From assembly GCF_006345805.1 (NCBI RefSeq), contig NC_043005.1:20584001-20648000 (forward strand): DNA of 64,000 nt. The letters are read 5' to 3'. Within the stretch, counting starts at the first letter, position 1. Each line of letters starts with the position of its first letter. Shown in pieces: positions 134 to 63,128 of the stretch. The position numbers were made by a program, and so were the translations under genes. The stretch is from Octopus sinensis (lineage: Eukaryota). The notes beneath the pieces were generated by a model, which was not told where the DNA came from, did not search any database, and saw only the letters and a list, made by a program, of their open reading frames with translations.

Positions 134-364
134 CTGAAGGTGTTTTAATATTTAAAAAAGCTTCGATACCAGGTTATGATACATTTGGTCAGCTGAAAAA
201 TGTGAGCTTAAAGGAGTGTGAGCATACTTGTTATCAAACTCCAGGATGTAACTCTTATGAGTATCAAGAAAGTTCTAAAATTTGTGATCTGAGTAATGTG
301 ACCCACTTGATTCGTAACCTCGAACCTAATGCTGAAGATTGGGATACTTATGTCATTAACCCAG
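134..364 (+). CDS. Exon B1, PAN/apple domain type B
   Basis: ctttctag|CTGAAG...AACCCAG|gtcagt, 231 nt; [76 protein letters not shown]; PAN core CxxxC-x5-C-x11-C. Missed by the ORF track (no ATG). Confidence 0.9.
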
Positions 365-1223: not shown

Positions 1224-1291
<68 letters not shown>

Positions 1292-4200: not shown

Positions 4201-7200
4201 GACTGAAATATCCACTTCTGAATTTTGTAAACCATCTTCTGCAAGTTCTTTCATTCAAGCATTCTTTCCCATAAACTGAGTGTATGTTTCGAGTTGCTTC
4301 GGCTGCAGAATTTCCTTTTTCGTACTCATAAAACATTATGAGCCTCAAATGCCCTTTGGATACTTCCATGTTAGAAAGGGTTTTAATCAAAGAAAATTTA
4401 ATTCTATTATTATAATAATATTTAATTAGCTTAGATGTACACAAATGCATAAAAATAATTTTTAATTCCATTAGACATTTTAGAATACTATTAAATTTCA
4501 TTCAATTTTAAAATAAGGTAAAATCGGACAGAACTTACGGGATGACCTGATCTATATTTATATTACATTCATATATATATATGTACACATGCATATATAT
4601 ATATATATGCACACACACACACATATGTACAAATAAATGCATGCATGCATACATACACACACACATGCATACATACATATTTGCATGTACTTATATTTGT
4701 GTGAAAATGTCTTCCATTTGCTTCACTCAATATCATCTATTCTAAATTAGTCATTTTTACTTCATTGTCTTCCACTGCATGACATGCAAGCAATCTTGTT
4801 ATCAAGTTCTCTTTTCAATTTCAGTTACACTGACCATTGACTGTGGACCGCCAAAAGATGTTGCTGGTGCATCAAAGGTTTACAAAAACACAGCCTATAA
4901 ATCTGAAGTGACCTATAGCTGTCGAGATGGACCAAGCAAAAAGTCAGTATGTGGAAAGAACAGTAAATGGACTCCAGTTGCGCTTATTTGTAATGGTAAT
5001 GTAGATAACTTCTTTATTATTGTTTCTTTCTTGGTGATCTCTATATTATAATTCTGAAATGCGAAAAGTTTGTTTGTTTGTCTGGTTTTGGAATTGAGAA
5101 CGGGTTAAAGGCCACTAGATCTCGTCGAATTGACTCCAAAATTTACAGGGACATGTAAAATGAGGTGAGGATGCGAGTGGGCTAGGATAGAAATCCCCAT
5201 CTTAAAAGGTGTCGTTGCTTGGGCCAAAAACGCACTTTGACAAGTCTCCTCTCATTCTTTTATGTATCTGTCTTCCTCCATCACTCTCTTTCCTCCCTTT
5301 CCATCACATTCTATCTATAACGTCGTTTCACAGCGTCTATTATCTTACCCTCGCCGCCATCGCATTCTATTGTCTGCTTGTCTTCCTCCATCTCTCTCTC
5401 TCTCTCTCTCTTTCTCTCCTCCCTTCCTTTCACTTTCTCTCTATAACGTCATTTGATAGCGTCTATTATATTTCCTTCGCCAGCACTGTCACTCTCTCTC
5501 TCTCTACGTCTGTCTGCATTCATAAAGAGAATTATCATCGCCAGCACCACCACACAATCATGATAATCTTTCTCTTAAAACAAATCATCTTTAGGTTTCA
5601 AAATATTTCATTTTTCAGTCCTCTCTTTCATATATCACCTTTTCTTCCTCGATCTCTCTCTTTCCCTCTTCTCTCCATTTTCTCTCTCTCTATAACGACG
5701 TTTGGCACCTCCGCCGTCTCTCTTTCTTCTCCAACGCGTCTCTCAATGACAGCCGCAAAAGTTTAAATATACCTACCACAGGTCTTTCAGAAAGGTAACA
5801 GATATTATTTATTTTTGCGTGGATAAAAAGAATTTATTTGTATGCTCAAGCCGACCGTCGTTAACAAAAATTTTTCTGTAAATTTGAAAAATTTTCCAGT
5901 TTTGAAATATTTAGGAATTCTCTGTTACATCAAGCTAAAAAATTTGCGCCAGCCTTTTAAATCGTCAATGTGTTGCCGTCCATGATGAAGAAGTTTTGAA
6001 TGCTTGCCATGGTGAGTCTACTGTCGTGAGAAAGAATCACTTCAAAACTTGGTGTTAAGGAATTTTCTTTTACATCAAGTTCAAAATTTTATGCCAACCG
6101 TTAAACTGCCACTACGTTGCTGTCTGTCGTTAAGAAATGACGGCCATGGTGACTCTACTATCCTCAGATTCCGTCCCTTCAAACTTTGGTTTCCAATATT
6201 TTTTTTTTCAACTCGCAAATTTGTCTGTCCCTTTTAAATGTTAGTGTTTTGCTGTCTGCCTTGAAGCAGACCTTTCCGTTGTCACTGCCTGATATTTATG
6301 ATTGATCTTTCAAACTACTTTCTTTCTCAACTTACTCAAGATCTTTTGTTGTTTATAAATGGGAGATAGATAGATAAAGATAGAGAGTAAGAGAAAGCGA
6401 GGGAGAGTCCGAGAGAAAGGAAGAGTAACAGAGTGGGAAAGGGAGAGAGAAACAAAGAGGGAGAATCATCATCACCCTCATCATCATCATCATCGTTTAA
6501 CGTCCGTTTTCCGTGCTAGCACGGGTTGGACGGTTTGATCGGGGTCTGGGAAGCCAGGAGACTGCACCAGGCTCCAGTCTGATCTGGCAGTGTTTCTACA
6601 GCTGGATACCCTTCCTAACGCCAACCACTCCGTGATTGTAGTGGGTACTTTTTTCGTCCCAGGGGGGGAGGGGTGCTGACAGCGGCCACGATCGGTTGGT
6701 GCTTTTTACGTGCCACCGGCACAGAAGCCAGTCAAGGCGGCACTGCTATCAGCCACGTTCGGATGGTGCTTTTTACGTGCCGAAACGATGCAACAGAAAA
6801 TAACAATCACACTCTTACCCGTGCGTAGAGTGGGTCACCTTAAGCTAGTTAATATTTATAAATATGAAATGCGAAAAGTTTGTTTGTTTGTCTGGTTTTG
6901 GCATTGGAACGGGTTAAAGGCTACTAGATCCCATCAGATTGACTCCAAAATTTACAGGGACATGTATAATGAGATGAGGACGTGAGTGGGCTACATTAGA
7001 AATTCCTGTCTTAAAAGGTGTGGTTACTAGGGAAAAAGCGCACACTTTGACAAGTCTTCTCTCATTCTGTTATCTGTCTGTCTTCTGTCCATACTCTTTC
7101 CTCCCTTCGTTTCACTTTCTCTCTATAATGTCGTTTGACAGTGTCTTCTATCTTTCCCCCCGCCGCCTTCACTCTTTCTCCCACATTCTCTCTCTCTCTA

Positions 7201-12433: not shown

Positions 12434-12491
<58 letters not shown>

Positions 12492-15400
12492 CATACATAC
12501 ATGTAAGTATGCATGTACTTATATTTGTGTGAAAATGTCTTCCATTTGCTTCACTCAATATCATCTATTCTAAATTAGTCATTTTTACTTCATTGTCTTC
12601 CACTTCATGACATGCAAGCAATCTTGGTATCAAGTTCTCTTTTCAATTTCAGGCACAATGACCATTGACTGTGGACCGCCAAAAGATGTTGCTGGTGCAT
12701 CAAAGGTTTACAATACCACAGCCTATAAATCTGAAGTGACCTATAGCTGTCCAAGTGGAGTAAACCAAAAGTCAGTATGTGGAAAGAATAATAAATGGAC
12801 TCCAGTTGTGCCTATTTGTAAAGGTAATGCAGATAACTTCTTTATTATTGTTTCTTTCTTGGTAATTTTGTTACGTTTTTCTGTTGTCTTTGTGAGAGAA
12901 ATTCTGTACAATATAAAGTTTGAATCCTTCCTTACTAAAACTCAGCAACCCTCTGAAACATATCTCTGATGCTCTTGTTTTCTTCCAGTCCACCACCATT
13001 AATTATGATAATGCTACTAATAATAATGATGACTGATTTTTGCTAAAATCTAACAGTTTTTGATGGGGGGCTGCTTAATCAATATTGTCAATACTACTCT
13101 TTAGTTGGTACTTTGCTATTCACCCATGCAAGTATGGAAAAAAAAGTTGGATTTGAACTGAGAACATGAAGAAGTTGGATACATAGTGTAAACTATTTTT
13201 TTATAAAGCTCTAATTAGTATACCTGTATATATTAAAAACAAAGATGATAATGATGTTGATAATCATTTTGAATGTAAAAGGGTCTCTATCTGAGACCAA
13301 TTGAAGAACCCCACCATTGAAGATTACCATGAAGTCTATGGACAAGCATCCTCTGCAATTTTCATTCCTTGTCCTACAGTTTCATGCACTGTTGTTCCCA
13401 TCTACTCCTATCATTTTTGCCACATTCACCTCTCTTTCAATAATTTCCATTGAGGACAGTTCCATCCTCACCTTCCTTACAAGTGAAACTTTAAAACTGC
13501 AGACGAAGGATTGACCAAAGTGAAATGCTACTGTCATCCAATCTTTAACCTCTTCCTCAATGCAACTTCTTTTGCAACAATAACCAAACAGAGGAAAATT
13601 TCCTTCTCTGCCAAATTAAATGAAGGTGTGAGGTAATCACCATGATGGACTTGGCTTGCACAAATATGCATTCTGCACATAACAGCAACTCTTTGACATA
13701 ACTCCTGTGTTTGGTTGAAGAATGGGCCAAAATCTTTCTTGCACATTCCCACATTCTTCCTCAGCAGTGTCTCCAGACTCTGAACAATAGTACTAAGAAT
13801 TCTCCTGCTATTATGGTAGATGTCTGCCAAAAGGCTGCCAAACAAATCTGGCATGAACTCAGAGAATTCATAGGGTAGACCATCCAAACCAGACAATTTC
13901 TGACCTGTTTCTAACCTGTGCAATCACTCATCACTCCTGTATTTCAGTGGCTGTCATTTGTCTTTTGCAGAACCTTGCATCTGTTGTAGAATCACAGCAG
14001 GCTGTCCAGGTACAAACTAAAGTCCATCTGTTCAGAACCAAGTAGCATGTGCTACTGTTTGTTTTGGTTTGGTTTGGTTTCTATGGCTAGATGCCTTTCC
14101 TAGCACCAATCCCACTGCAGAGTGTACTGGGTGCTATTTATGTGGCACAATCACCAATGATTTTTACATGGCTCCTGCACCAATGCTTTTTACATTGTAC
14201 CTCAGTTTTAGGATCTCCATTCTGTTGTGATGGGCAGGTCTTCTCAAGTGCAGCAATGTGCCACATATCTCAGTCCTCTGTCATCCCCTTCGTAAGGTTC
14301 ACATAGAAGTTAATGCATGCTCTGTAGTGAATTAACTATCCTCTGGTCAGTCAAAACTTATGAAATATGGCCAACAACAGACGATATAAAACTAAATTCT
14401 AATGAGAAAGAATGATGAGCTTTAGAGCAAGATGTTTTTATAGTTTTTCAAATAACAGTATTAAGATTTAAAATTTTACTAATATAGTGAAGCAGAGTAA
14501 TATTATAGATAACGTCCTTGATTTTTGCTTCATAGTTAATACCGTTTACTTCTTAACATAAAATGAATGAGTAATTTTGTTTTAATTGAAATATTTTTAT
14601 AACAAATAAGAGAATAGAAAATGAAAATGAGAGAGAACAAAATAAACTGTAAACATATAGCTGAACATTACAACATTGGTGACATGAATATGCTCCATAT
14701 TCATTGTGAAGCTCTTAGATTTCTAAATGATCCTCTGAACAGCTACCACATGAGGAATGTTATGCTCCCTAAATTACAGCCTTATCCTGAAGAACTGAAG
14801 GGATTTTTAATAAAAATAATGTAGAATTGATCTCTTTCCATAAAACTTTTAGGAACTGCCTTTTCCTATGCTTCATTTGGGATGAAAATAAATACACCTG
14901 AAGGACAGGGATCTAATTGTTTCAAAGTTCAGGGACAAACTTATACAATTTCTACTCTTCACCCTGAAAGCCAAAGCCCACAGTAGAGTCAATTATCTAT
15001 ATTGGATCATCCCATAAATAATGTGTTGTTTTTTTAATTGCATGAACTAAAAACCAGAAGGGAGTGGAATAAACTATCTGCATCACTTTGCTATAAAAGC
15101 AGGTAGTAATTTTACCTTTTTTCTTATTCTTAGTGTAAACTTTGAAGAGTGCAGTTCTATTTTAAAAGTTATTTTTTCAAAGCTATAATTCCTTTCGAGT
15201 GCTGAGCCTCACAGAGGCAAAGTGGCTCAGTTCTTTTTGAGTGTTGGGCCTCATGGAAGCAGTGACTGAGACCTTTGGCATTATGTCGTGCTTGAGAAGA
15301 AAACCTATCAAGCCAAGCAAAATCGCAGTCATTGTAGATACTGGTTTCATGCAAATTGTTACCTATGCTGGTGGCATGTAAAAGCACCTATTACACTTTC

Positions 15401-38239: not shown

Positions 38240-38277
<38 letters not shown>

Positions 38278-40170: not shown

Positions 40171-40249
<79 letters not shown>

Positions 40250-40264
40250 ATATAAAGATATCAT

Positions 40265-40321
<57 letters not shown>

Positions 40322-41905: not shown

Positions 41906-42000
<95 letters not shown>

Positions 42001-45000
42001 TTCTTCAATTTGTTTCACTCAATAATCTTTATTATAACATTGTCATTATCTACTCATTCTCAGTCTCCTTCTAAATTAGACACATCATCAATATCAATAT
42101 CAATATCTTATCAATTCCAGTTTACACAGAAATCGACTGTGGAACTCCAAAAGACATTTCTGGTACATTTAAGGTGTACAAAAGTACTGCCTATAAAGCT
42201 GAAGTGACCTATATTTGCCCTGATGGAGAGTTTCTAAAGTCAGTATGTGAAAAGGATGACAAATGGACTTTTGTAGCATCCACATGTGAAGGTAACATAA
42301 ATAGATTTCCTCTTATTGTTTCTGTCTATGTATTTTTATTTTATTTTTGTTCTAAATGCCTTTGTTAGAGGAAGACTGGCTAACTCCATGACAATTTCCG
42401 TGGTGCTTGTGGCTGGATGGAGTAGAGAGGAAAATATTGTCAGACCACAATCCTCTGCAAATGCAGACAGAGTGGACATCATTAATTCTAGCCAAGAGCC
42501 AGATATTAAATTGGGTGATGGATTAAGTCTAACAACTAAGAATTTGAACTGTGGAAGCTTGTTTCTTCCAGTAGGTTTCTGCATAGTCTAATTATTTTTC
42601 CAATCTTCCTTTCTTAAATACTACTACTACTGCTACTAAATGATGATGATGATGATGGTGGTGGTGGTTTCTAATTTATTCACAAGAGCAGGAATTTTTC
42701 ATGAGTGGGGTTTAAGTCTTTACCATAGACTTCAGTACTTGAATGGTACTTCATTTTATTGACCTCAGAATGGATAAAATGCAAAGTTGACTTTACTGGA
42801 TTTTAACTCAGAACATAAAGAGCCTAAATACATAATGCAAAGGATTTCTTTTAAAATTCTAATGATTCTTTGAGTCAACAGTCCTTAATTATAAAAATAA
42901 TAATGATGTCTTTATTATTATTTTGGCTGCTTGTGTTTGCAATTGTTCCCAACATTCATGAGCTTAGGTGAGGACAAGCATGATACCCAATTTAAAGGTA
43001 GCTTGTTAGCTTTTTTGCCAACATCCACCAACCACTTCTCTTCTGCAGATTGAATGCTGGAACTGGCCTATTACTACGCCAGTATCACCAATTCTAGCAT
43101 CGAATTCAACCTCCTGCTTCCAATCATTTGTGAATATGGACTCACTTGTCTCAGTAATGTTTCACTAACCTGCAGAATGCTGTGGGAAGACTTTCACAAG
43201 GAGTCTTTGCAACACTAATTCTCATCCCTGTTTTGCAACATTCAGCAGTGAACCCATTCAGTGCATGCTGGAGATTGCCTTCTGATGAACCAAATAGTAC
43301 AAAGTTGTCTGTAAATATCTGCCAACCAATCCTTTACTTACCAATTGTGATACCACTTCCACAGTGGCTGCACATGTCAGTCCACTTCATAAGAATTATA
43401 AAAAGTACAGATGACAATATGCTCTACTGCTGGAGTTCAGTACTCACAGTGTAAGATTTTGACTCAACACTATTTACCTAAACACAGATATGAGGTGTTA
43501 TCAAAATGTTCCTGGACTAGTTCTGTAGCATGTCAACAGATGGCAGCACACAGTTGCATGTGTAGTGAGAGATAGCAGTGAACATCATGAGGCAGTGTAT
43601 TGAGTGACGTTGCTGTGTTTATTTCACAAGTTGTGAAATTTGTGTTTTTATGATCATGTGTATGCTGTAGTCTCTGATTTCATCATGGACAGGAAGATGG
43701 AACAAAGAGCCAATGTGAAATTTTGCATTAAACTTAGGAAGTCTTCTACAGAGACATTGAGCATGCTTCAGAAAGTTTATGGCAATGAGGCAATGGGTTG
43801 TACACAATGTTTCAAGTGGCACAGGCACTTCAAAGCAGAAGAACATTCCTGGAAGATGATGAGTGATCTGGAAGACCTGCCATGAGCAACACCCTTAGAA
43901 ATGTGGAAAAAATTCATCAGCTTGTGCATAAGGATCGTCAGAAGACAATTAACGATATTGCTGATATTACTGGTCTGTTATATGGGTCCGTGCCAGCAAT
44001 CCTAATGTCTGGATTGAACATGCAGTGTACCTCCACCAAGTTTGTCCCCCACCTGCTGACAAACTGGGCAGAAAGAACAATGTGTCGAAGTATGTCAAAA
44101 TCTCCATCTGCCACTCTCTACACATCCTAGGAATATTAGAACCAGTGTATTGCTGTGACTATTTCAAAGAAGATGATGTTTATACTGTGGTGGAAGGAAA
44201 ACTGGAAGCAACAAGAGATGATATCAAGTCAGCAAGTGAGAAGAAAAGTTTTTACCTGCTTGCGGTTTTTTGCTATGTGCCCAGGGTGGCCACATTGGAA
44301 CACACCACCATTGGCTTCAGTTCTGTGCACTCCCTGACTATGTGTGAACCTTGACATTTGAAAGACGGTCCCTTGGTCATTTGCCTTGCCAGACTCTTGC
44401 TGTAATTGTTTGCTACCTGTCTCATCATCCCACTTGTAGCTGTCATCACTGTTGCCACTACATCTTGAGTGTTGCCTTGCATCAACACATATGATTTATC
44501 AATTGTCTCTCCTACAGATATCGTTGCGATATCTGGCATCTGCTGTAGATGTACAGAGATATTGTCAGGGAAGCTAGTTTCAAAAGTCAGCTTCACTATC
44601 TGCTCCATTGCTGCTCCAATAAACCCTGCTACGCTCACCAATCTCCTAATCTCGCTCACATAATTATCTATCTGCTTGTTGGTCCATCTAACCTTTCTGA
44701 ACTTGCTGTAGGCTTTAAAAGTACCCTCTGTGTACACATCCTTCAGCCACTCTTAAATTTTTTCTGCTTTCTTTTTGTCTGCCTCATCCATCTCCAGGTA
44801 GAAACTCAGTGTGTTGCCTTCTAAATACAATAGTATGAGGCTTGTCACATCTTTTATTCCTTGTAGCTTCACCACTAATCTCACCTTCTTGATCCAGGCC
44901 ACCACATCACCTTCCCCAGTGAATGATCTCAACACATCATTTCCAATTCTGAATTTTGTGGCCATTACAAATAAAGGGCATGAACAACAAAATTTATTAA

Positions 45001-48000: not shown

Positions 48001-51000
48001 GACTTCAAGCTGACCACAAGGCCTATTGCATGTTTTGACCTACCCATAAATCAAACCTAACCTTATTTCTGCATGTAAAATTACCATACATAAACAGTAT
48101 TTGATTCAAATTTAGTGCTCCATCCTGGTTTATGATGAATTCTTTACAATTAGTGAAGATTTCAAGCTGAAATATGGCTAAATATCAGTAAATATTACTT
48201 GGTTTTAGGCAGTTTTAACTATTTTTTCCAATTATTACCTTTTAAATTGGGATGTGTCTAATGTATCAGACCATCTTATAAGCCACAAAATATGGTATAT
48301 ATTTGTGCATATATATATATGTATGTTTATATTTATGTCTGTGTGCTGACTTCTTCACTTTTTTTCATTCTGTATACTTTATTGTTTGTTTGTCTTTGTC
48401 TTCTTATTCTCCTCCTCCTCCTAGTATTGATGAACTTTTGGTATCACACTGGAATCAATTTTTGTTTTCATTTTCAGCTTATGAAAAAATTAACTGTGGT
48501 ATTCCAAAGGATGTTGTTGGAGCTATGATGTCCTATGAAAACACCATCTATAAATCTGAAGTGACCTATATTTGCCCAAAGGGAGTAAAATTAAAGTCAG
48601 CATGTGGAAAGGACAAAAAATGGACTCCAGTGGCTTCTACTTGTAAAGGTAATGTGAATAGCTTCTGTCTTCTTGATTCTGTTCCAATAAATTTGTTTTA
48701 ATTTGTGATAAATGTCTTTGCTAGAGGATAATTTCTATGGCTTTTGTGGCTGATAGGAGGGAGAGTGGAAGGTATTTTCATTCAGGGACCTATCTAAATG
48801 CTTACAACTTGTCTCCAATTGGTTTCCACCAAATTTCATCAACAGGGCTTAGCTGTGAAGCAAATTCCTAAGCAACACAAAAAAAAGCTCCATAACTCCA
48901 TCTGAAATCACATTATTGTTAAGTAAACTTATTGCATCCACAGCTCATCTGGGTAGCTTTTCTGTTAATTTCTAATTTAACCATTCTCATTTGAACGTTG
49001 TGTCATTCTCCAAAATTCTGTACAATATAATGTCTGTGTCCTTCTTTATAAATACTCAGTAATCCTCCGAAACAGACATCTGATGCTCTTGCTGCCTTCC
49101 AATCCATTACCCATAATAATAATAATGATGACTAATATTATTATTCATTTATTCACTTACCATCTCCTAATTTAGCTATTATCATGTTTCAGCTTCATTC
49201 CCCAGCATAGAGATGCAACACTTTTCTAAACACAGGGGTATTCCATGTATTTCTGCCAACTGAATACTTCCTATGAAGTTTGGTATTTGCAACTTTTGAT
49301 GCCAGAATATTGCCCTCTTTAAGTTGGCCCCAAGTGCAGGGATCACAATAGGTACCACACTCACTTTTGTGACTCTATAGGCTTGTTTCATTTTCAATGC
49401 TAAGTTTTTGTTCTTCTAACTTTCTCATTCTCTGGCTTCACAACATTCTGGTCTGCAGGTGTAGCTATGTCAACAAAGGTCCATCCTTTGGACTCCTTCA
49501 GTAGAAGAGTGATATCTGGTCAGTTATCCCTTGTGAGTTTCTTCTGACCATCCCCTGCTACTGGCAAATGTTGGTGTTCATACCACTTGTTCAAGTGTTC
49601 TAGCCCTTCTTGCAAAACTCCCAGTGTATTCACACAACCACTTTATTATAGAGGTTTTGTACTCCTTTTGGGTCAGTTTTGAGCATCCACTAACTACATC
49701 TCTGACTGTATCAGATGATTTTTCACATAGTCTACACAAAGGTGGTATTGATGTTGTATTAATGATACACTTGATTGAACTGGTTTGTAAATCTTGTTCT
49801 TGAACAACAAAAATCCATCCTTCTGTCTCCTTAAAAAAAAACTCTTAACCCTCTCCAGGATTCTTCATCAATTTCATCTAATGTTTTTGGAAAAACTCTC
49901 CTTGTAGGACTTCCTCTTTCCAGTTGATGATCTTTTCTCTATTATTGCTCATATTGTACACACCATTGTCACTGATCACCTTCTCACTCACTACAGAATG
50001 CAACATTCTTTTAATATTATTCCTCAGATAGGCATTCAAGGACTTGGTCTCTTTCACAACACTATCTCCTATTCCAACTAGTCCTCTTCCACCTTCTTTT
50101 CTAGGTAAGCAAAGCCTTGCTATGTTACTTCTAGTTTAAAAGCACCCATGCATAGCCATTACATTCCTAGCTTTTCTATCCATGTTGACTAATACCTCCT
50201 TTGTCCATTCCACAACTCCTGCATAATAATGTATCACACCTAAAGCCCAAATGTTGATACCTCTAATCAGATCCATCTATTCAACTTCATAGCTTTTTAG
50301 CTCTTCTGATATATTCAGAAGAAATTTTCTCCTTCATCTTCATGTTCACCATCTGGCCAAATTATAAAACAGCAAGGTAGTTTTAATCCTCTCTATTCAC
50401 TTCTCTTATGCACTCATCATCTGGAAGTTGTACTCTACTGCTAATTATTATTATGTGTGCAAAGCAATGAAACTCTTTTGCATGCACTCATGCAGTGTCT
50501 AAGTATTACTGATTTGTGGAGTTATGTCAAATAGCTGTGATCATGTCTGGGACAAGTCCAACTATTGGCTGAATCCACTACCTACCTTTAATGGGGTATG
50601 GCAGGCAGTGTTCCTCTGTCTAGTGGCTAAGGCAAAAGAAATTGTGTGAAAGGACTGAGTCAAGAGCTTATTGGCATTTTAAGTTCTACTTGGAAAAGAA
50701 AGTTAGAGTGAAAAATTAAGTGTTACCTCCCAGTGAATTTATGAAAAGATGTATGATTCTGGCAAAAATGGTTAGAGTGAGTGGCCCTACTCAAAATATG
50801 TGCCTGTAGATTGGAGAGATTGTCAAAATGAGGCTGAAGTATGTGCAGATTCTGATGCTAGTTCCGTTCTCTTAAATGATTTCATCAGCTATGTAATACC
50901 ATGTATACATTGAAAATAAAGATAAGGATGACGATGCAATCCTCTTGAGTGTACAAGGATCTCTATCAATGATCCCTGTAAACTCTATGGCCAAGTGTCC

Positions 51001-54000: not shown

Positions 54001-54860
54001 ATAAAGATAGACACTTTTTTTTAACATTACTAACCACGTAACTAACCATATAAGTTAAATCCTTTTATGTTCTATGTTCCAATCCCAACAGGTTGTATTT
54101 TGCCTCACATATTTCTGAAGGCTATTAAAAAAGCACTAATCAAATACTGAGGTTCATTTATTTTTATCTATCCTTACTGCAGATTCTGTGGCCCTGTGCT
54201 TAATTTAGGAACCATTATCATTAATGTTGGTAACATCGACAATAATTATAATTAATCTTGTCATTAAGGATGATGGATTGACAGAACCTTCAGAGCATGA
54301 GACAAAATATGTTGAGATATTTGTTCTTATTTATATTCTAAGTTCAAATCCTGCTGATGTCAACTTTGTTGTTCCAGGGCTGTTAAAATACAATGCCAGT
54401 CAAGTGTAGGGGCCAATTTATTTGACCAATTCCTAACTTAAAGTTTTGGCCTTATTACTATGTTAGAAATTAATATTATTATTGTTATTTTTCATTGGCC
54501 TAAATTTTACATTAACTTTTAGATCCTCAGATCCATTTTGTGAAAGTAAAAGATTCGGTTCTGGATGTATCTGGAAAAATATTGTGGAAGAAGAAAAATG
54601 TAACAACAGAAGCCTGTGCAGAAAAATGTTTGACTGACAAAACTTGTTTATCATTTGAAATAAATCGCAAAAGTGGAAAATGTTACTTATCAAAGAAAAC
54701 TGCAGCTTCTGTCAAGAAATTAAAGTTAGCTGAAAGTAAAGATTACCACCAACGAGTAAAATGTAATTATTCTTTGTATTATATTATTGTTCTTTACCTC
54801 ACATTCTGAAATTTGTATTTCCATTTCTACTGAAACAAGCCAGTAAGAATCTGATATGCA

Positions 54861-54892
<32 letters not shown>

Positions 54893-56203
54893 AATTATGT
54901 AGATATTTAGCTCACTCTGGTTCATGTTAACATCCAGAAACTTGAAAAGCAATTTGAGTGCAGAGAGAATGGTGCTACATCTCAGCAAATTTGTTGATAC
55001 AGAAATGAGTTGTGAGCATGGTGCAAATGAATTTGAAAATTCTTGGTATACGCCTGAAAACTGGAGACAGGTTACTGAGAGAGAAAACTTGTCTTAGTGT
55101 TCAAGGTGACTGTAGTCAAGTAATCCTAGGCGATTTCCCATTCTTTGGGGAAATTTTCCTTGTTTGAAATTTTAGTTTCTTTGTCATTTTACTTTTTGCA
55201 TGATCTTTTATGTCATTTTACTCTGTATCTTTATCTTGCATCCCCATCTTTATTGTCTCACCTTAATAATTAATAAAGATATTAATTAATAATTAATATC
55301 TATTTCATAGATATTTAAAAAATATTAGGTAATTATGTATAAGTACCTGCAACTGAAATTCTGAATAAAATATTTAAAAACCATCTTGTACTTTTTTTAA
55401 ATGATAATTTTGTATACAAAATTATTTTTCAGCTTAAATCACTCTACTCAGAATTAATGTGAATTCTATTACATCATGAGACATGTAGTTTTGTCTCAGA
55501 GCTTAGGTTGTAGATAATCCATTTGTACAATGCCCTTCCCATGGAGTCCTTTTGTTTAAGATTGAATGGCCATAGCAATACTTGATATGTTGGTTGACTA
55601 CCTGTTTAAGAGAGTATTGGCCCTACAAAATTGTACCACTAGAAGAAATATGTACAATTGTATTGTCTGCAACCTATATGTTGAGACAAGGTTTCATATA
55701 TGTCTGAATATGTTCTAAAATTCACATGAATTCTGATTAGGGTGTCATTTGGTGAAACAATTATTTGTCCATTTACAAAACCACATGTACTACATACTTT
55801 GAAATATTTATGTGTGTGTGTGTCTGTGTGTGTTTAGATGGGTGGATGAGTATATATACTCGTATAGATTTCTCATTTTCTTTTTCTTTTTGCAGCTGGT
55901 GAGCCTTTGAAACTTAAAAAAGTTAGCATACCAGTCCATGATGTTTTAAGACAGTTTAAGAATAAAAACTTGAAGGAGTGTAATGAAAATTGTTATCAAT
56001 ACGCAGAATGCAATTCTTATGGTTACAATGAGGAAGCTAAGATATGTGTACTTAGTAATGTGACTCAACTGACTCATGAGCTTAAACCTGTCACAGGAAG
56101 CTGGGATATATACATCATTCACCCCGGTCAGTACAATATTTCCATTTTATTTATGTGTGCATATGTCTGTGTGTATTTAAATATATGTATATGTGGACAT
56201 ATA

Positions 56204-56260
<57 letters not shown>

Positions 56261-56262
56261 CA

Positions 56263-56297
<35 letters not shown>

Positions 56298-59200: not shown

Positions 59201-59683
59201 CCTCAATGGTGGCAGTTGCGGGGGCGTCCAGACCTCTGGTCATCCTCAAGACTTTCTTTTACATTCCTAAATTCAGCTGCTCACTTTGCACTGTTGCTAA
59301 AGCTGGTGCATCATCACTTAATGGAGCAACCATGTTAGTATGAATGTCCTTGAGTGCTAAACCCTTTTATTGCAGGTACTTGATAATAGTATGATACCAA
59401 TTTTTGTCCATTTTCAAGAGAATTCACTACTAGTTACTTTTGAAATCTTTAAACATCCAGATGTCAGTTTACTTATTAATAACTGCATTGTTTCTTTCAA
59501 GGTAGAGTTGAAATTAATGCATGCAAGATTTCGCAGCTTTGGCATCACTCTTTCATAATCAGCCTATGAACATTTCAGCCCACCCTCATATGTGAAACTC
59601 TAAACACAACAGTGGCAGTCATCCATCTAACTGTACTCACAAAATATACTCCATACATGCATGCATACATATATACATACATA

Positions 59684-59741
<58 letters not shown>

Positions 59742-62700
59742 TACATACATACATACATACATGCACACATGTTTATATTTATATTTATATCTGTGTGCAA
59801 ATGTCTTCACTTTGTTTCAGTCAGTATCTTCTATTCTAAATTCATCATTATCCCCTTCGTTTTCATCCTCTTCCTAGTATATATTCACCATTAATATTAA
59901 TTTCTCTGTTCACTTCCAGTATTCGCAATAATTGACTGTGGACCTCCAAAAGATATTATTGGTGCATCAAAAGCTTACAATACCACCACCTATAAATCTG
60001 AAGTTATTTATACTTGCCCAGGAAAACATAAGCTTAAGTCGATATGTAAAGAGAACAATAAATGGACTGCTGTAGTGTCCCATTGTAAAGGTAATGTAAA
60101 TAGGTTCTCTCTTGTTCTGTCCATGTAATTTTATTTCTGTTTTTTTGTTAAGAGTCTTTGTTAGAGAAATAATGGTTGTGTCCTTGATAGTTTCTTTTAT
60201 GTTTCTTACTGGTAGAAGGGAGAGATGAGGCTATCCTTTGTCCATAGACCTCCCAAATTCTTGCAACATTGAACTTCATTAAAGCTATCGAATGGCCAGG
60301 CAATGGTATTAATTCAGGTAATGGATTAAGTCTACCACCCAAGAACTGGAAGTGTGGAAGCTTGTTTTCTCCAGCAGGATTCTACTAAATTTCATCCAGG
60401 AGGCTTAGCTACGAAGTAAACTTTTAGTCATACCATCAAAAGTTCACACAATACTACATTCTTCTTAGGTAAATTTATTACCTCCACATGTATATCTGAG
60501 CTCATCTTGATAATTTTCTTCTCAATTTCTAACTTGATCTTTCTCATGCATACTTTGTGTCATCATCTGAAACTCTGTATACTAAAATGCCCTGAGTCCT
60601 TCTTTACTAAAACTCAACAATCATCGGAAATCTCCAATGCTATAGTAATTTTCCATTCCACCATCAAAAATTATAATAATACAAATTAATATTAATGACT
60701 TCTGAAGGGTTTAGTCAATACATCAACTCTAGTACATGACAGTTATTTTATGCTATTCGCTCTCACAAGAATGAAAGGCAAAGTTGATAATGACTGGATA
60801 ATAAACTGTAAACATGAAGAGCCTGAATATATACCATAAAGCATATCTTCCAGTCCTCTAATTAGTATACATGTATACATCTAAAATAAGGATAGGGACA
60901 AGGATACAATGCTCTTTAATGTAGTGTGATTGCTATAAGAACCATTTGAAAAACTCCACCATGAAAGATCATCCCAAACTCCAAGGGCAGATGTCTTCTT
61001 CAATTATTGTTCTTTGACCTACAAATTTATGTACAGTGGGCCTCATTTGCTCTTGCCATTTTTGCCACTTCCACTTCATTTTCAGTAACATCCTTTCCAT
61101 CTTCACTTTCATTAGAAGTGAGATATTGACCAAAATGTAAAGTCTCCATTGCCAGAACTTTCAACCGCAACCACCTCACAACCTCTTTTACTATAGCTAT
61201 CAGACAGAGAAAAACTACCTTCTTTACTTAAGTTAAAGGAGAATGTGGGACGATCATCATGATGGACTTGACTAATAGCCAGATCTACCTCACACATGCA
61301 ATAGCTGCTGTTTGATATAACCCTTCAAATCAGCAATGCATGGACAATGACTGAGTGCATGTAAAATGATTTTGTTGCACTGTGCACATCTTGGACAGCT
61401 CTGTCTGATGGCTATTCCATGACTGTAGATTTTATCTTGGACCAGTAGACTTTCTTCTAAGAACTCCAGAAAGTTGTCCATAATATTCCCTGATCAAAAG
61501 ATATTTGAAACAAACTTGCCATTTTATACTCATCAATGCCCAGAGCAGCCTTGAGAATGTCAGTGCTCTTTCCCCTCCACTAATATTCTATAAATTGCTA
61601 CAGTGTAACACCTGTCAATTCCATTACCTAGGTCAGGTTTGATCCAATATACTTAGGATTACATTAGATAATTTGGCCTCTCATTTTTAAGATAGTGGAG
61701 TATGATTGTGTCAAATTTTGTTGATATTTCTAACATGGACATCCAATAAAGGGTATTTTCACAATGGCTGGTCTTAGTAAATTTTGAACTTAATAATACA
61801 AGCTAAGAAATTAGTTACAGCTTATCCTCTGATATAATCTGTTACCTAATTCAACACTATCACCATGCCCTTCAGGTGGTCATGGTGTTGATGGTTGACA
61901 ATACTTGTTCCAATTGTATATTTATTACAATAATAAACACTCACATTGACCCACAAATACTCAGGCTTGGCATAGACTACGTCTATCTCCGAAGTGTAGA
62001 AGTGAGAATGGCCTGAAATTTTCATGACATATCTGTTTCTGTTGCGATTAACCTAATAAAAAATGAAGTTACCACCACATTGTAATCAATTCTTTATTCG
62101 TTGTTAAGACACAAGGTCAAGCTCAATTAGAGAAAGCAGTGAGATTGTTTGATATTTATATCTTTCTCAAGAGCATTAAATGTCTATGTAAAGTGAACTG
62201 AATCAAACTGAGTATCAAACCTCAATCGTTGGCTCACACCATTCTGTCAATATTTACACTAAAAGAGGAACTGGGGAAAAATAGTCAGGATCACTTCCTA
62301 CATGGAAAACAAATAACAAAGTAACTACTTATTGAAGATATTATGATTAACTAAAATTTCACCCGTGTTGGATAGTAAAATCATTATGTTATTGACTTGT
62401 TAAAATATGTACAGCAAATGTTTAGATACACACCACAAAGTAGTGTAGCTTAGTGAATGAAATCACGAAAACAGCTATGTTGTCTTATTTCTCAGTCTTT
62501 GGGCACTCATATTTTACCATGTCTTATTGCAAACCACATTCATGAATAAAGCATCCACTATGTAAAGTAAACACCATCAAATTGTATTCATAAATTTAGA
62601 TAACATTGTTTTCACTGTACTGTATTAAAAAATAAAAATTGTTTGTAAGCTTAAAATAGGTTTTTATTAACCATGCATTATTGAAAATGCATTGGTAAAT

Positions 62701-63128
62701 AAAGTACAGAACTGGGAATGGTTATTATCGGTTTAGCCTAGAGACAAGTAAATTTGGTGAGCCTAGTCTAGAGACAAGTTAATTCGACTTCAGTTGTGTC
62801 TCCTGGAACCAACTAATGACGCAGGGTGAGGTATCCTGTCTTATTGTTGTTGTTGTTTTCATTGGTCTAAATTTTACTTTAATTTCAGCTTCTCAAATCC
62901 ATTTTGTGAAAATTAAAGATGCAGCTTTGAAAGTCTTTGGAAAAACATTGTTGGACAAGGAAAATGTAACAACAGAAGTTTGTGCACGAAAATGTTTGTC
63001 TGACGAAAATTGTTTATCATTTGAAATAACTAAAAAAAGAGGAAAATGTTATTTATCAAAAGAAGCTGCAGATTTCTCCAGGAAAATAAGTAAAGACAAA
63101 AGCAGAATTTATTACCAACGAGTAAAAT
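134..63128 (+). CDS. Multi-exon gene (internal part only) encoding a large extracellular protein of tandem PAN/apple and Sushi/CCP modules, order B-S-S-A-B-S-A-B-S-S-A-B-S-A
   Basis: 14 exons, each with a polypyrimidine-AG acceptor and GT donor, length divisible by 3, phase 1-1, no stops and 4 conserved Cys. Consecutive splicing gives one open frame of 972 codons. No start or stop exon was found in the window. Confidence 0.9.
587..950 (-). mobile_element. Two adjacent SINE fragments (tRNA-derived types)
   Basis: 587-770 carries ccccaggactta...cctggtactta...ctaagttacgggga. 818-950 carries tttccgtctaccaaatcc...acacttgctcaaggtg...ggactgaaccc, the reverse of a pol III B-box-like head; a homologue lies at about 34100-34250. 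Boundaries approximate. Confidence 0.55.
1068..1225 (-). mobile_element. SINE 3' portion with (GAT)n tail
   Basis: (cat)n-ttaacgt...ctagcatgggttggacgg...ctggatgcccttcctaacgccaaccactc; the same family recurs more than 10 times in the window. Confidence 0.7.
1226..1376. repeat. (TA)n/(TACA)n microsatellite
   Basis: Direct reading; source of the spurious YIYI/HTYI ORFs. Confidence 0.95.
1377..2620 (+). mobile_element. Degenerate Tc1/mariner-superfamily DNA transposon (DD37D maT-like)
   Basis: TA-flanked imperfect TIRs cagggtgcgatgggtaaattg / caatttattcaccacaccctg; broken transposase ([18 protein letters not shown] and downstream catalytic-domain remnants). Confidence 0.7.
2630..2905 (-). mobile_element. 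SINE, (GAT)n-tailed family
   Basis: Same sequence family as 1068-1225. Confidence 0.7.
2925..3269 (-). mobile_element. Mariner fragment (TIR plus transposase C-terminus)
   Basis: TIR-like caaagtggtatcaaaaggttctcagactag (also at 21948 and 43491); [26 protein letters not shown]. Confidence 0.7.
3272..4550 (-). mobile_element. Full-length degenerate mariner (DD34D) transposon
   Basis: TIRs tcaggtcatcccataagt / acttacgggatgacctga; [32 protein letters not shown] and catalytic [16 protein letters not shown] in broken frames. Confidence 0.85.
4825..4995 (+). CDS. Exon S1, Sushi/CCP domain
   Basis: tttcag|TTACAC...TGTAATG|gtaatg, 171 nt; [56 protein letters not shown]; CxxP...C...C...W...C pattern. 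Confidence 0.9.
5038..8396 (+). mobile_element. Head-to-tail dimer of a non-autonomous Helitron (5038-6848 and 6849-8396)
   Basis: 5' TC start with tgaaatgcgaaaagtttgtttgtttg (repeated near 6865); 3' hairpin acccgtgcgtagagtgggt followed by CTAG (6848) or GTAG (8396). Inserted between A5037 and T8397 with no TSD; the empty site is visible in the paralogous intron (ttggta|attttgtta, near 12865). Unit 1 contains a SINE at about 6470-6800. Confidence 0.75.
8436..8690 (-). mobile_element. 3' LTR of Ty3/gypsy element
   Basis: Minus strand reads TGTGA...TTACA, immediately preceded by polypurine tract GAAGGGAAAA (8691-8700). Confidence 0.75.
8691..12376 (-). mobile_element. Ty3/gypsy internal region gag-PR-RT-RH-INT, frameshifted, 5' LTR missing
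   Basis: gag with CCHC knuckle ([14 protein letters not shown]), protease ALIDTGS, RT ([16 protein letters not shown]), RNase H, integrase ([15 protein letters not shown]) in gypsy order across several frames. Confidence 0.92.
12653..12823 (+). CDS. Exon S2, Sushi/CCP domain (recent duplicate of S1)
   Basis: tttcag|GCACAA...TGTAAAG|gtaatg, 171 nt; [56 protein letters not shown]. Confidence 0.9.
13300..13990 (-). mobile_element. Fossil Tx1/L1-like LINE RT fragment, shared with paralogous introns
   Basis: [10 protein letters not shown]...[13 protein letters not shown]; homologous remnants at about 32460-33240, 50990-51345 and 60900-61680. Confidence 0.6.
15002..16655 (+). mobile_element. Degenerate mariner transposon nested in the Helitron, itself containing a SINE (about 15170-15545)
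   Basis: TA-flanked TIRs ttggatcatcccataaataat / attatttatgggatgacccaa; [23 protein letters not shown]. Confidence 0.85.
17136..18225 (-). mobile_element. TRIM-like miniature non-autonomous LTR retrotransposon
   Basis: Direct repeats 17136-17284 and 18088-18225 (TGTTG...ATATCA on minus), 5-bp TSD TTTTG on both sides, PBS-like TGGCGACAAGGA after the 5' LTR, polypurine tract GGAGGGAGG before the 3' LTR. Confidence 0.85.
19935..20250 (-). mobile_element. SINE, (GAT)n-tailed family, with internally duplicated segment
   Basis: ggatgcccttcc-aa-ccaaccact motif occurs twice (about 20055 and 20156). Confidence 0.65.
20628..20705. repeat. (GA)n(GT)n microsatellite
   Basis: Direct reading. Confidence 0.95.
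20997..21236 (+). CDS. Exon A1, PAN/apple domain type A
   Basis: ttctag|ATACTC...GTGAAAT|gtaatt, 240 nt; [79 protein letters not shown]. Confidence 0.9.
21948..22680 (+). mobile_element. Internally deleted mariner
   Basis: Left TIR caaagtggtgtcaaaaacttcc; HTH remnants ([19 protein letters not shown]) and [26 protein letters not shown]. Confidence 0.75.
22830..23190 (-). mobile_element. R4/Dong-like (REL-endonuclease) LINE 3' fragment
   Basis: [32 protein letters not shown]...[18 protein letters not shown] followed by a short 3' UTR and (TAA)n. Confidence 0.75.
24330..24482 (+). mobile_element. tRNA-derived SINE fragment
   Basis: ctttcatcctttcggggttgat-attaagtaccag core; minus-strand relatives at about 31970-32165 and 42690-42890. 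Confidence 0.65.
24779..25012 (+). CDS. Exon B2, PAN/apple domain type B
   Basis: ttccag|CTAATG...AATACAG|gtcagc, 234 nt; [77 protein letters not shown]. Confidence 0.9.
25470..27690 (+). mobile_element. Degenerate RTE-clade LINE (APE endonuclease plus RT)
   Basis: GVQEVRWKG...GVGILLAEK-like EN motifs; [24 protein letters not shown]; many stops and deletions. Confidence 0.85.
27720..29095 (-). mobile_element. Ty3/gypsy gag-protease fragment
   Basis: gag (KLEVLL...[25 protein letters not shown]), CCHC remnant ([11 protein letters not shown]), protease ALLDMGSD. Confidence 0.8.
29097..29370 (-). mobile_element. SINE, (GAT)n-tailed family
   Basis: Near-consensus copy of the family at 1068, 2630 and 6470. 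Confidence 0.75.
31176..31346 (+). CDS. Exon S3, Sushi/CCP domain
   Basis: tttcag|TTTTCA...TGTGAAG|gtaaca, 171 nt; [56 protein letters not shown]. Missed by the ORF track. Confidence 0.9.
31970..32165 (-). mobile_element. tRNA-derived SINE
   Basis: ggtacttattttatcaaccc...aaaggcaaagt...ggtggaatttgaatt; reverse complement of the 24330 family. Confidence 0.65.
32460..33240 (-). mobile_element. Fossil Tx1/L1-like LINE fragment (paralogue of 60900-61680)
   Basis: Shared ttccatt-cctaggtcaggtttgatcca...cttaggattacattagataat block. Confidence 0.6.
35227..35466 (+). CDS. Exon A2, PAN/apple domain type A
   Basis: ttccag|AAATTA...GTAAAAC|gtgatt, 240 nt; [79 protein letters not shown]. Confidence 0.9.
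36757..36990 (-). mobile_element. SINE, (GAT)n-tailed family
   Basis: Family motif gatgcccttcttaatgccaacc with (cat)n tail. Confidence 0.65.
37214..37740. repeat. Foldback/MITE-like element with internal inverted subrepeats
   Basis: ggacacaatgccaaa arrays (about 37370-37445) versus tttggcattgtgtcc (about 37548-37563). Confidence 0.45.
38368..38601 (+). CDS. Exon B3, PAN/apple domain type B
   Basis: ttgcag|CCAATG...AATCCAG|gtcagt, 234 nt; [77 protein letters not shown]. Confidence 0.9.
40175..40320. repeat. (TA)n and (TAA)n microsatellites
   Basis: Direct reading. Confidence 0.95.
42121..42291 (+). CDS. Exon S4, Sushi/CCP domain
   Basis: ttccag|TTTACA...TGTGAAG|gtaaca, 171 nt; [56 protein letters not shown]. 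Confidence 0.9.
43491..45833 (+). mobile_element. Mariner-TIR-bounded composite: HTH remnant plus internal gag-bearing segment
   Basis: TA-flanked TIRs tgaggtgttatcaaaatgttcctggactag / ctagtcctggaacgttttgataaaacctca; [24 protein letters not shown]; catalytic domain absent. Confidence 0.8.
44273..44965 (-). mobile_element. LTR-retrotransposon (Ty3/gypsy-type) gag remnant
   Basis: [36 protein letters not shown]..., EIRRL, and a CGHPGHIAK knuckle remnant; frameshifted. Confidence 0.7.
45990..47520 (-). mobile_element. Degenerate RTE-clade LINE (EN/RT fragment)
   Basis: [15 protein letters not shown] and GVLIPIFK...CPNHRGIS remnants. Confidence 0.65.
47790..48180. repeat. Degenerate tandem repeat, unit about 165 bp, about 2.5 copies
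   Basis: aggcctattg-atgttttgacctacccataaatcaaa and aaatttagtgctccatcc each occur twice; ttcaagctga three times. Confidence 0.75.
48478..48648 (+). CDS. Exon S5, Sushi/CCP domain
   Basis: tttcag|CTTATG...TGTAAAG|gtaatg, 171 nt; [56 protein letters not shown]. Confidence 0.9.
49110..50420 (-). mobile_element. Degenerate R4/Dong-like LINE 3' half
   Basis: VQEQDLQT...PLCRLCEK...IHWEFC and [10 protein letters not shown] remnants. Confidence 0.65.
51350..52560 (+). mobile_element. Degenerate RTE-clade LINE RT 3' part
   Basis: [15 protein letters not shown] and YLGDLIS remnants; same family as 25470-27690. Confidence 0.8.
53400..53610 (+). mobile_element. SINE, (GAT)n-tailed family, plus orientation
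   Basis: gtggttggcattaggaagagcatcc...ccatgctagcatggaaa...(gat)n. Confidence 0.7.
54523..54762 (+). CDS. Exon A3, PAN/apple domain type A
   Basis: ttttag|ATCCTC...GTAAAAT|gtaatt, 240 nt; [79 protein letters not shown]. Confidence 0.9.
55896..56126 (+). CDS. Exon B4, PAN/apple domain type B
   Basis: ttgcag|CTGGTG...CACCCCG|gtcagt, 231 nt; [76 protein letters not shown]. Confidence 0.9.
56205..56370. repeat. (TA)n/(TACA)n/(CCT,CAT)n compound microsatellite
   Basis: Direct reading; source of the poly-S, poly-E and poly-P ORFs. Confidence 0.95.
56480..57260 (-). mobile_element. RTE-clade LINE RT C-terminal fragment
   Basis: GPKVHLAKT...[14 protein letters not shown]; same family as 51350-52560. 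Confidence 0.7.
58352..59588 (-). mobile_element. Full-length degenerate mariner transposon
   Basis: TA-flanked TIRs tgaggggtggctgaaaagttcatag / ctatgaacatttcagccacc-cctca; [12 protein letters not shown]...[12 protein letters not shown]. Confidence 0.88.
59920..60090 (+). CDS. Exon S6, Sushi/CCP domain
   Basis: ttccag|TATTCG...TGTAAAG|gtaatg, 171 nt; [56 protein letters not shown]. Missed by the ORF track. Confidence 0.9.
60900..61680 (-). mobile_element. Fossil Tx1/L1-like LINE fragment
   Basis: [15 protein letters not shown] and RT remnants; paralogous to 13300, 32460 and 50990. Confidence 0.6.
62889..63128 (+). CDS. Exon A4, PAN/apple domain type A
   Basis: tttcag|CTTCTC...GTAAAAT|gtaatt, 240 nt; [79 protein letters not shown]. 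Confidence 0.9.

Follow-up and report, generated by a model that had tools for sequence, protein, structure and literature searches.

The exons for PAN and Sushi/CCP domains described here form what is probably an internal 63-kb piece of a very large gene, confined to Octopus, that encodes a secreted modular protein. The window, meaning the whole 64,000-nt stretch of Octopus sinensis NC_043005.1 that we analysed, contains exactly 14 such exons, all on the + strand, when one exon of each type is used as a tblastn query. Their order is B-S-S-A-B-S-A-B-S-S-A-B-S-A, where A and B are two types of PAN module and S is the Sushi/CCP module. The same array continues in other Octopus genomes, its modules are under strong constraint in frame and scaffold, and a subset of their positions changes unusually fast between species.

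Exon anatomy of the window

A first reading made from the letters of the window without database searches (the sequence-only reading) had listed 14 exons of three types in this order, with 56 cysteines and intact splice sites, and both the tblastn search and inspection of the exon boundaries bear out that description in full. Exon lengths are all divisible by three (B, 231 or 234 nt; S, 171 nt; A, 240 nt), and each of the 14 exons has phase 1 boundaries on both sides, with a polypyrimidine tract and AG before it and GT after it; the donor variants include GTAAT, GTCAG, GTAAC and GTGAT. Splicing all of them yields 971 codons with no stop and four cysteines per module, 56 in total. The assignment to PAN, PAN and Sushi, likewise made in that first reading, agrees with a Pfam profile scan of the spliced product, which detected PAN_1 in eight stretches (E 3.9e-60) and Sushi (E 1.1e-12), the modules comprising eight PAN and six Sushi domains; taken as single exons, each type passes the gathering score (A, 3e-11; B, 3.2e-7; S, 2.8e-5). 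The series lies far beyond chance, since a second species retains these exons with unchanged lengths and splice sites. In the list below, orthologue coordinates refer to a merged locus of 79.6 kb from Octopus bimaculoides, assembled from two overlapping loci around LOC128248837 and LOC128248838.

134..364, + strand: exon 1, PAN type B, 231 nt, 4 Cys; orthologue outside the fetched O. bimaculoides stretch
4825..4995, + strand: exon 2, Sushi/CCP, 171 nt; recent duplicate of exon 3
12653..12823, + strand: exon 3, Sushi/CCP, 171 nt; orthologue 192-362
20997..21236, + strand: exon 4, PAN type A, 240 nt; orthologue 3251-3490, with length, AG/GT and 4 Cys kept
24779..25012, + strand: exon 5, PAN type B, 234 nt; orthologue 3758-3991
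31176..31346, + strand: exon 6, Sushi/CCP, 171 nt; second in-phase acceptor AG at 31185; orthologue 5419-5589
35227..35466, + strand: exon 7, PAN type A, 240 nt; GTGA donor; orthologue 8171-8410
38368..38601, + strand: exon 8, PAN type B, 234 nt; orthologue 9984-10217, where LOC128248837 begins mid-domain
42121..42291, + strand: exon 9, Sushi/CCP, 171 nt; first of an S-S pair; second acceptor at 42130
48478..48648, + strand: exon 10, Sushi/CCP, 171 nt; second of the S-S pair; orthologue 13535-13705
54523..54762, + strand: exon 11, PAN type A, 240 nt; orthologue 14983-15222, truncated in the public gene model
55896..56126, + strand: exon 12, PAN type B, 231 nt; orthologue 16351-16581
59920..60090, + strand: exon 13, Sushi/CCP, 171 nt; orthologue 18624-18794
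62889..63128, + strand: exon 14, PAN type A, 240 nt; orthologue 19743-19982; the O. bimaculoides array runs on downstream

Apart from the modules, a search of the window detected no exon resembling a signal peptide, the N-terminus of a public model or a GON domain, and neither a transmembrane exon nor a glycosylphosphatidylinositol-anchor exon was found in it. Exons 6 and 9 each have tandem in-phase acceptor AGs 9 nt apart (31167-31185 and 42112-42130). Alternative 3′ splice-site use is possible there, and the downstream acceptor would drop three residues (V/F-T-E and V-Y-T, respectively). With the upstream acceptor the length is 171 nt, like that of the remaining S exons, and the O. bimaculoides model of the exon 9 orthologue uses this acceptor ('VYTEIDCG').

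The array extends far beyond the window in Octopus genomes

Protein searches with the window exons returned only Octopus relatives, with a best identity of 88%: LOC128248837, LOC128248838, LOC128248840 and LOC106869402 of O. bimaculoides, LOC118764741 of O. sinensis and two models of O. vulgaris, one of which is named 'SVEP1-like'. O. sinensis LOC118764742 also belongs to the family. No well-characterised orthologue emerged, the orthologues being only automatic models labelled 'uncharacterized LOC' or 'SVEP1-like', and full-text literature searches combining PAN, apple, Sushi, GON and the locus names with octopus or cephalopod uncovered no publication about it. The O. bimaculoides models share one strand of a single record (CM046610.1, 88.248-88.816 Mb), with PAN/Sushi models of 1865 and 4083 aa in between. 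A peptide from the region of the 4083-aa model matched nothing in the word-indexed protein search; this model and the 1865-aa model seem to be missing from the index, so the family is larger than the match lists suggest.

The merged O. bimaculoides locus contains 39 modules that follow a grammar in which a B module, one or two S modules and an A module are repeated in that order. Window exons 3-14 are collinear, one to one, with positions 192-19982 of this locus, and the introns between them align at approximately 94%. At the level of genomic exons, exons 8-14 share 76-88% protein identity with the DNA stretch covered by LOC128248837 from its start, and the orthologues of exons 3-7 sit upstream of the annotated start of this gene, in DNA without a gene call. 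The grammar also continues without a break near LOC128248840 (21 modules) and near LOC106869402 (17 modules). It does so too in O. vulgaris, along a 95-kb stretch free of assembly gaps (OX597823.1:24091157-24186146), where 19 modules run across three adjacent models of 861, 857 and 3597 aa. Over five stretches from three genomes, 105 of 110 modules are intact, having in-phase AG and GT, an open frame and four cysteines; three of the remaining five touch assembly N gaps, and an atypical B module together with its orthologue, at which the boundary finder failed, makes up the rest.

Among the O. bimaculoides models only the last has a distinct end, formed by four exons that encode a GON domain (E 1e-33). 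Directly downstream, and bounding the array on its 3′ side, lies an unrelated gene for a CACHD1-like dCache protein of 1431 aa (positions 37416-41495 of the fetched stretch L003). Measured from the first module read up to the stop codon that follows the GON domain, the span amounts to 567,673 bp, of which 27% was read, with about one module per 1.9 kb in the part covered. Extended over the whole span, this spacing would correspond to roughly 290 modules and some 20,000 residues, a figure that is arithmetic rather than a result.

A constrained scaffold with fast-changing positions

Rates of change were estimated from 12 orthologous exon pairs between the window and O. bimaculoides, comprising 2514 nt and 215 substitutions. 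These pairs contain no indel, whereas the introns, with 11.8 gap openings per kb, predict about 30, and no stop codon, compared with a mean of 9.1, and never zero, when the 215 substitutions were scattered at random 5000 times. All 48 cysteines are kept (the simulated mean loss was 9.4, and zero loss occurred in 0.02% of the 5000 runs), as are all 24 splice dinucleotides, for which about four losses were expected. The lack of indels, stops, lost cysteines and lost splice sites implies strong constraint on frame and scaffold.

Yet when the 12 pairs are pooled, the nonsynonymous rate (dN) is 0.091 and the synonymous rate (dS) 0.084, giving a ratio (omega) of 1.08, and the exons diverge by 8.55%, compared with 5.9% in the introns (10.8 kb) and 6.1-6.3% in the first 150 bp of flank (exon versus intron, two-proportion z ~4.8). 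The result is the same without the exon 3 pair, whose orthology is ambiguous (omega ~1.07 from 195 substitutions in 2343 nt over 11 pairs). An omega near 1 is what a decaying, non-functional relic of an array would show through neutrality, but such a relic should by now have accumulated some nine stops, 30 indels, nine lost cysteines and four lost splice sites instead of none of each, and would not be expected to keep 105 of 110 modules intact in three genomes. When codons were divided into classes according to their conservation among paralogous modules of other family proteins, omega was 0.17 in the conserved class and 1.24 in the intermediate class. With this value for conserved codons, and with frames, cysteines and splice sites intact, pseudogene or neutral decay was rejected, and we give the relic explanation practically no credence.

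The excess of change is concentrated in the variable codons, where dN is 0.161 against a dS of 0.085 and an intron rate of 0.062, and nonsynonymous and synonymous changes number 92 and 13. An independent replicate of five exon pairs about 170 kb further along, compared between O. vulgaris and O. bimaculoides, gave 22.5 nonsynonymous and 1.5 synonymous changes in the variable class; pooled, the two variable classes hold 114.5 and 14.5, compared with 102.5 and 26.5 expected (z ~2.6). Between exons 2 and 3 of the window, a recent duplicate pair, there are 14 nonsynonymous changes and one synonymous change. Strong divergence of surface residues between copies, as claimed from the window alone, is thus supported, and it extends to orthologues. 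The data fit purifying selection on the scaffold combined with diversifying selection on a subset of exposed positions.

An excess of exon over intron divergence might also arise from non-allelic gene conversion among the repeated exons, or from relaxed constraint, in place of positive selection. The exons, repeated at least 14 times at 63-78% nucleotide identity (90% for exons 2 and 3) and bordered by paralogous flanks, are a good substrate for conversion; overall omega is just ~1.08 in the window region and 0.73 in the replicate; and the dS of 0.084 lies slightly above the intron rate. However, the flanks within 150 bp belong to the duplicated unit and yet diverge by the 6.1-6.3% given above rather than the 8.55% of the exons, the excess is nonsynonymous and falls in the variable class in both data sets, and 11 or 12 of the exons have clean one-to-one orthologues. 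We consider conversion or relaxation an unlikely, though not negligible, source of the excess and retain selection on exposed positions as the preferred explanation.

Structure and chemistry of the modules

AlphaFold models of the modules contain one helix plus strands in each PAN domain, with predicted local distance difference test scores (pLDDT) of 84-89. A B-S-A unit from the window was predicted with good domains in loose mutual orientation (pLDDT 84, predicted template modelling score (pTM) 0.43), and an A-B pair, represented by the O. bimaculoides orthologue of exon 14 and the B module that follows it, as one compact body (pLDDT 89, pTM 0.82). From this difference, the natural unit of the predicted structure is an A-B pair joined to one or two Sushi spacers, as the sequence-only reading had proposed.

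Searched singly with Foldseek, the modules superpose on the plasminogen PAN domain with a root-mean-square deviation (rmsd) of 1.6-1.8 Å over 75-77 columns and on the HGF N domain with 2.5-3.5 Å. Sequence comparison pairs the S module with the CCPs of DAF, CR2, MCP and CR1, and the B module with MIC4 and SML-2. Four cysteines per PAN module are invariant in the aligned units, as are C84, C110, C120, C133 and W126 of the Sushi module. The 971-residue product is rich in cysteine (5.8%) and lysine (13.7%) and has an isoelectric point (pI) of 9.0, the A modules being basic (pI 9.4-9.7) and the B modules acidic to near neutral (4.7-7.8). Of its 13 N-x-S/T sequons, 11 fall at a single position that recurs within each module type, and 11 of 14 modules carry one of these. 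Judged by sequence, this composition and the sequons fit features of a secreted glycoprotein.

One gene or several

The public annotations hold this locus as fragments, and its status as a single gene turns on how those fragments are read. Annotation in O. bimaculoides, O. sinensis and O. vulgaris consists of several adjacent models each, of 380-4083 aa. The models start in the middle of a domain, have no signal peptide, and end by reading through into the intron after a module. LOC128248837 (in the stretch CM046610.1:88248156-88294128) has such a mid-domain start, and in it the orthologue of exon 11 is truncated at an internal donor. The O. vulgaris model P0004 omits modules that are present in the genome. 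Three further intact modules occupy the 'intergenic' 8 kb between LOC128248837 and the next model, and in O. vulgaris one model stops 542 bp ahead of the start of the next without an assembly gap between them.

The models could nevertheless be right in outline, in which case the locus would be a tandem cluster of separate genes with approximately 10-60 modules each, and the window would span parts of one or two of them. Two small relatives fit this arrangement, namely a 356-aa protein of Argonauta hians with its own signal peptide and four PAN modules and a 359-aa protein of Sepia pharaonis; moreover, just 27% of the O. bimaculoides span was inspected. This arrangement is harder to reconcile with models that begin inside a domain and end in an intron, with intact but unannotated modules in the gaps, with two models only 542 bp apart, with a grammar and strand that never break, and with a window in which no start-like or GON-like exon was detected. 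We regard a cluster of separate genes as a serious but rather unlikely alternative. The picture of a giant modular gene given in the sequence-only reading was right as to one continuous, same-strand array and understated its scale, the array being much bigger than the window; its unity as a gene is where the public annotations, by splitting it, disagree.

A different possibility is that the cassettes are alternative exons, and that splicing of subsets generates a diversity of isoforms and not one fixed giant protein. All 14 exons in the window, and about 105 of 110 elsewhere, have symmetric 1-1 phase, so that skipping keeps the frame; modules are skipped in P0004, and exons 6 and 9 have the tandem acceptors noted above. 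Symmetric 1-1 phase, however, is usual for shuffled exons of extracellular domains, and module skipping in an automatic model is weak evidence; docking or selector sequences and clusters of mutually exclusive exons were not seen, though no search was aimed at them. A splicing-based generator of isoforms seems to us improbable. A contiguous B-S-A-B sequence labelled 'MetaClust' (P0010) was considered as transcript evidence; it is a UniParc entry of unknown origin and was not counted as RNA evidence.

Several points speak against our preferred reading, in which the window is an internal piece of one very large gene for a secreted protein. In three species the annotation pipelines divide the array among several genes, and 'one protein' accordingly remains a hypothesis; neither a signal-peptide exon nor the 5′ end of the array was found in the stretches read; and the remaining ~73% of the O. 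bimaculoides span may hold other genes or breaks. Exon anatomy, domain identity, orthology, array continuity, constraint and rate pattern are all shown by the data, whereas the joining of the cassettes in a single mRNA, secretion, ligand binding and the biological setting are our inference. In the replicate described above, the exons (omega 0.73) are not faster than their flanks (7.3% versus 7.9%), so that change 'faster than neutral' is local and rests on the class of variable sites. Gene conversion among paralogous exons could inflate exon divergence and is the main caveat to the rate analysis, though the flanks are not inflated. Finally, the packing of A against B is a prediction, and among solved two-PAN tandems (factor XI/prekallikrein, MIC4, SML-2 and AMA1) none superposes on it (rmsd ~10-14 Å).

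With these points weighed, we still judge it probable that the window belongs to one very large gene. A bolder version, which we put forward tentatively and hold to be possible though not likely, is that the entire array is one transcription unit, at least 568 kb long in O. bimaculoides and well over 1 Mb in O. sinensis (the latter figure derived from the module spacing in the window), with 150-300 modules and 10,000-20,000 residues, a GON end, PAN pairs under diversifying selection and perhaps skipping of cassettes. If so, its product would rank among the largest animal proteins and would constitute an Octopus-specific germline library of binding surfaces on one polypeptide.

Duplication history of the array

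Same-type paralogues in the window share 47-67% protein identity and are about equally distant from one another, with the exception of exons 2 and 3 at 79%. The latter are 90% identical at the nucleotide level and lie within a duplicated segment of 460 bp (4585-5038 versus 12407-12866) that is 88.9% identical overall. O. bimaculoides seems to have both copies, the second of which is cut by an N gap (merged locus 546-555), and this gap leaves the assignment of the orthologue to exon 2 or exon 3 ambiguous. A repeat of seven exons within the window, which the order of the modules might suggest, was rejected, as exons 1-7 resemble exons 8-14 no more than they resemble any other copy. Downstream of the window's orthologue in O. 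bimaculoides, by contrast with the window, the best paralogue lies exactly 13 modules away for 16 of 37 modules, which reveals a higher-order repeat of 13 modules (BSSA-BSA-BSA-BSA) and approximately 26 kb, the modules at ~21.8-48.8 kb of the merged locus corresponding to those at 44.0-75.4 kb. Identities at this offset reach 82-93%, far above those of window pairs other than exons 2 and 3.

Exons 2 and 3 together with the 13-module block indicate that both single-exon and multi-exon duplications have occurred. The serial exon-block duplication proposed in the sequence-only reading therefore has its clearest example in the O. bimaculoides array; within the window just exons 2 and 3 are a recent pair, and there is no signal of a seven-exon block. 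The part of the block structure that lies in the window is older than the divergence of the two species.

Distribution and comparison with known systems

When a B-S-A profile was compared with 1.84 billion representative proteins, full-length matches were confined to Octopus models, and the remaining matches cover the Sushi part or a single PAN domain only. With complete B-S-A units in Octopus alone among these proteins, the earlier suggestion that the family is lineage-specific gains support. Related pieces do occur in other cephalopods. A 359-aa protein of the cuttlefish Sepia (Acanthosepion) pharaonis (P0048) consists of PAN-B, Sushi, Sushi and a GON domain homologous to that of octopus, and the 356-aa argonaut protein (P0053) of a signal peptide and A-B-A-B, with no Sushi domain. 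The first may resemble the ancestor before its expansion, and the second may represent a separate PAN-pair gene. We take the building blocks to be older and the huge array to be, by inference, an expansion in the Octopus lineage. The family thus presents known domains in a new architecture, scale and rate pattern, of which public annotation holds fragments only.

The public Octopus models belong to the same gene family and locus and share the grammar, but they are automatic and fragmentary, and the introns of the window are about 2.5 times longer. The name SVEP1, attached to some of them, does not describe the family. SVEP1 is similarly a large secreted protein with many Sushi/CCP repeats, but it has no PAN domain, and Pfam found just the PAN, Sushi and (in one model) GON families in the octopus proteins, so that neither the window nor any model of the family has a detected VWA, EGF, HYR or pentraxin domain; on these grounds SVEP1 identity was rejected, and the name is a Sushi-driven mislabel. 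The GON domain that ends the O. bimaculoides array (model P0003) is shared with the C-termini of ADAMTS9, ADAMTS20 and C. elegans GON-1. Unlike those proteins, the sampled octopus parts (~27% of the span) contain no metalloprotease, disintegrin or thrombospondin repeats, all that was sampled upstream of the GON domain being PAN and Sushi modules, and since neither protease nor thrombospondin repeats were seen, the array is not an ADAMTS.

Among PAN proteins, the apicomplexan adhesins and lectins Toxoplasma MIC4 and Sarcocystis SML-2 use tandem PAN domains to bind glycans or host surfaces outside the cell, and they give the strongest PAN matches in sequence and some of the strongest in fold. 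They differ in lacking Sushi spacers, in having few modules and in coming from an unrelated lineage, and the octopus A-B pair does not superpose on them (rmsd ~10-13 Å). The N-terminal PAN domains of plasminogen and HGF share the fold and the four-cysteine core pattern, single octopus modules superposing at 1.6-3.5 Å over 75-88 columns. Vertebrate PAN/apple proteins differ from the octopus array in having one or four copies joined to a protease or to kringles. Apple domains carry a third disulfide that joins their N- and C-termini, and those of factor XI and prekallikrein accordingly have six cysteines, whereas every A and B module of the window has exactly four. The octopus modules are therefore not apple domains in the strict sense, though both profile and predicted fold place them in the PAN/apple superfamily (clan of PF00024), as the profile places the S modules in Sushi (PF00084). 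Abalone VERL, the comparison drawn in the sequence-only reading, is comparable, by analogy only, as a large extracellular repeat array with rapid, selection-driven divergence; its repeats are ZP-N domains and not PAN or Sushi.

Proposed function and significance

PAN domains bind glycans or proteins, as in the HGF N domain with heparin, SML-2 with galactose and MIC4 with host glycans, and CCPs serve as spacers and as protein-binding modules. Known roles of this kind lead us to a secreted, multivalent recognition or adhesion scaffold as the best-supported mechanism. The protein would be organised as beads on a string, with each exon encoding one disulfide-locked module; as all exons are in phase 1-1, any run of them stays in frame. 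In the repeat unit of PAN-A, PAN-B and one or two Sushi modules, A and B are predicted to form a rigid two-domain body and the Sushi modules flexible spacers. The array grew as single exons (2 and 3) and multi-exon blocks (the 13-module repeat) were duplicated in tandem, with selection preserving the frame, splice sites, cysteines, core residues and a mostly retained sequon per module type while exposed positions change at or above the neutral DNA rate. The predicted outcome is a multivalent extracellular binder that presents many different PAN-pair surfaces to glycans or proteins, plausibly at an arms-race or mate-recognition interface, for example an immune or mucosal barrier or the coat of eggs or sperm. 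The immune, gamete and mucus roles suggested in the sequence-only reading likewise stay at the level of proposals.

Pathogen-recognition and fertilisation proteins often pair a frozen scaffold with fast, partly adaptive surface change. Since the array combines the same two features, it is a candidate for such a role, and its rapid adaptive change suits a host-pathogen or gamete-recognition interface. It may thereby offer an entry point to octopus innate immunity, barrier biology or gamete recognition, areas with almost no molecular handles, and the PAN-PAN pair, predicted to be rigid, is small and can be expressed, which suits it to binding studies. A few large, lineage-specific gene expansions are a known feature of cephalopod genomes, and if the locus is one gene, it would be an expansion of a different kind, a single huge extracellular PAN-Sushi repeat gene. 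A further point is that current annotations of three Octopus genomes cut the locus into arbitrary pieces, some of them mislabelled SVEP1-like.

Introns, insertions and transposon remains

Exons 3 to 14 extend over 50 kb in the window as against 20 kb in O. bimaculoides. Nine blocks of 1.3-5.1 kb that occur only in the window, identified from the alignment with O. bimaculoides introns, make up the difference:

21347-24631: window-only block
25784-30893: window-only block
32601-33906: window-only block
35776-37128: window-only block
40353-41963: window-only block
42851-46914: window-only block
49259-53861: window-only block
57269-59242: window-only block
60563-62411: window-only block

For seven blocks the O. 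bimaculoides sequence runs through the junction uninterrupted, give or take a few bases, and six of these seven junctions have an overlap of 2-7 bp that could be a target-site duplication; the other two blocks adjoin microsatellite runs, with 67 and 304 bp left unaligned. The nine blocks look like lineage-specific insertions, which account for introns approximately 2.5-fold longer in the window, and several of them contain transposon reading frames. Module spacing is ~4.5 kb in the window and 4.7 kb in O. vulgaris.

Introns filled with transposable elements had been noted from the window alone, and transposon remains are indeed present:

9183-12277, − strand: long terminal repeat (LTR) retrotransposon remnant in the exon 2-3 intron, with gag-like, aspartyl protease, reverse transcriptase, RNase H and integrase pieces in broken frames (Pfam)
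3066-4501, − strand: Mos1/mariner-type transposase remnant, HTH_48 and Transposase_1 matches (Pfam)
43640-44130, + strand: Mos1/mariner-type transposase remnant, HTH_48 and Transposase_1 matches (Pfam)
22078-22738: probable Mos1/mariner remnant, judged from open reading frame text alone
58565-58849: probable Mos1/mariner remnant, judged from open reading frame text alone
1062-1226, 2621-2786, 6471-6632, 15399-15557, 19930-20180, 29093-29251, 36735-36909 and 53440-53599, both strands: element of ~160 bp resembling a short interspersed element (SINE)

Scans of the window for tRNAs and against Rfam returned nothing, the SINE-like element included. This element is present in eight or nine copies with 72-88% identity, often beside CAT or TA microsatellites. 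GC content falls to 24% at 40001-42000, in the intron ahead of exon 9, where a long TA/TATG-type microsatellite and low-complexity sequence are found.

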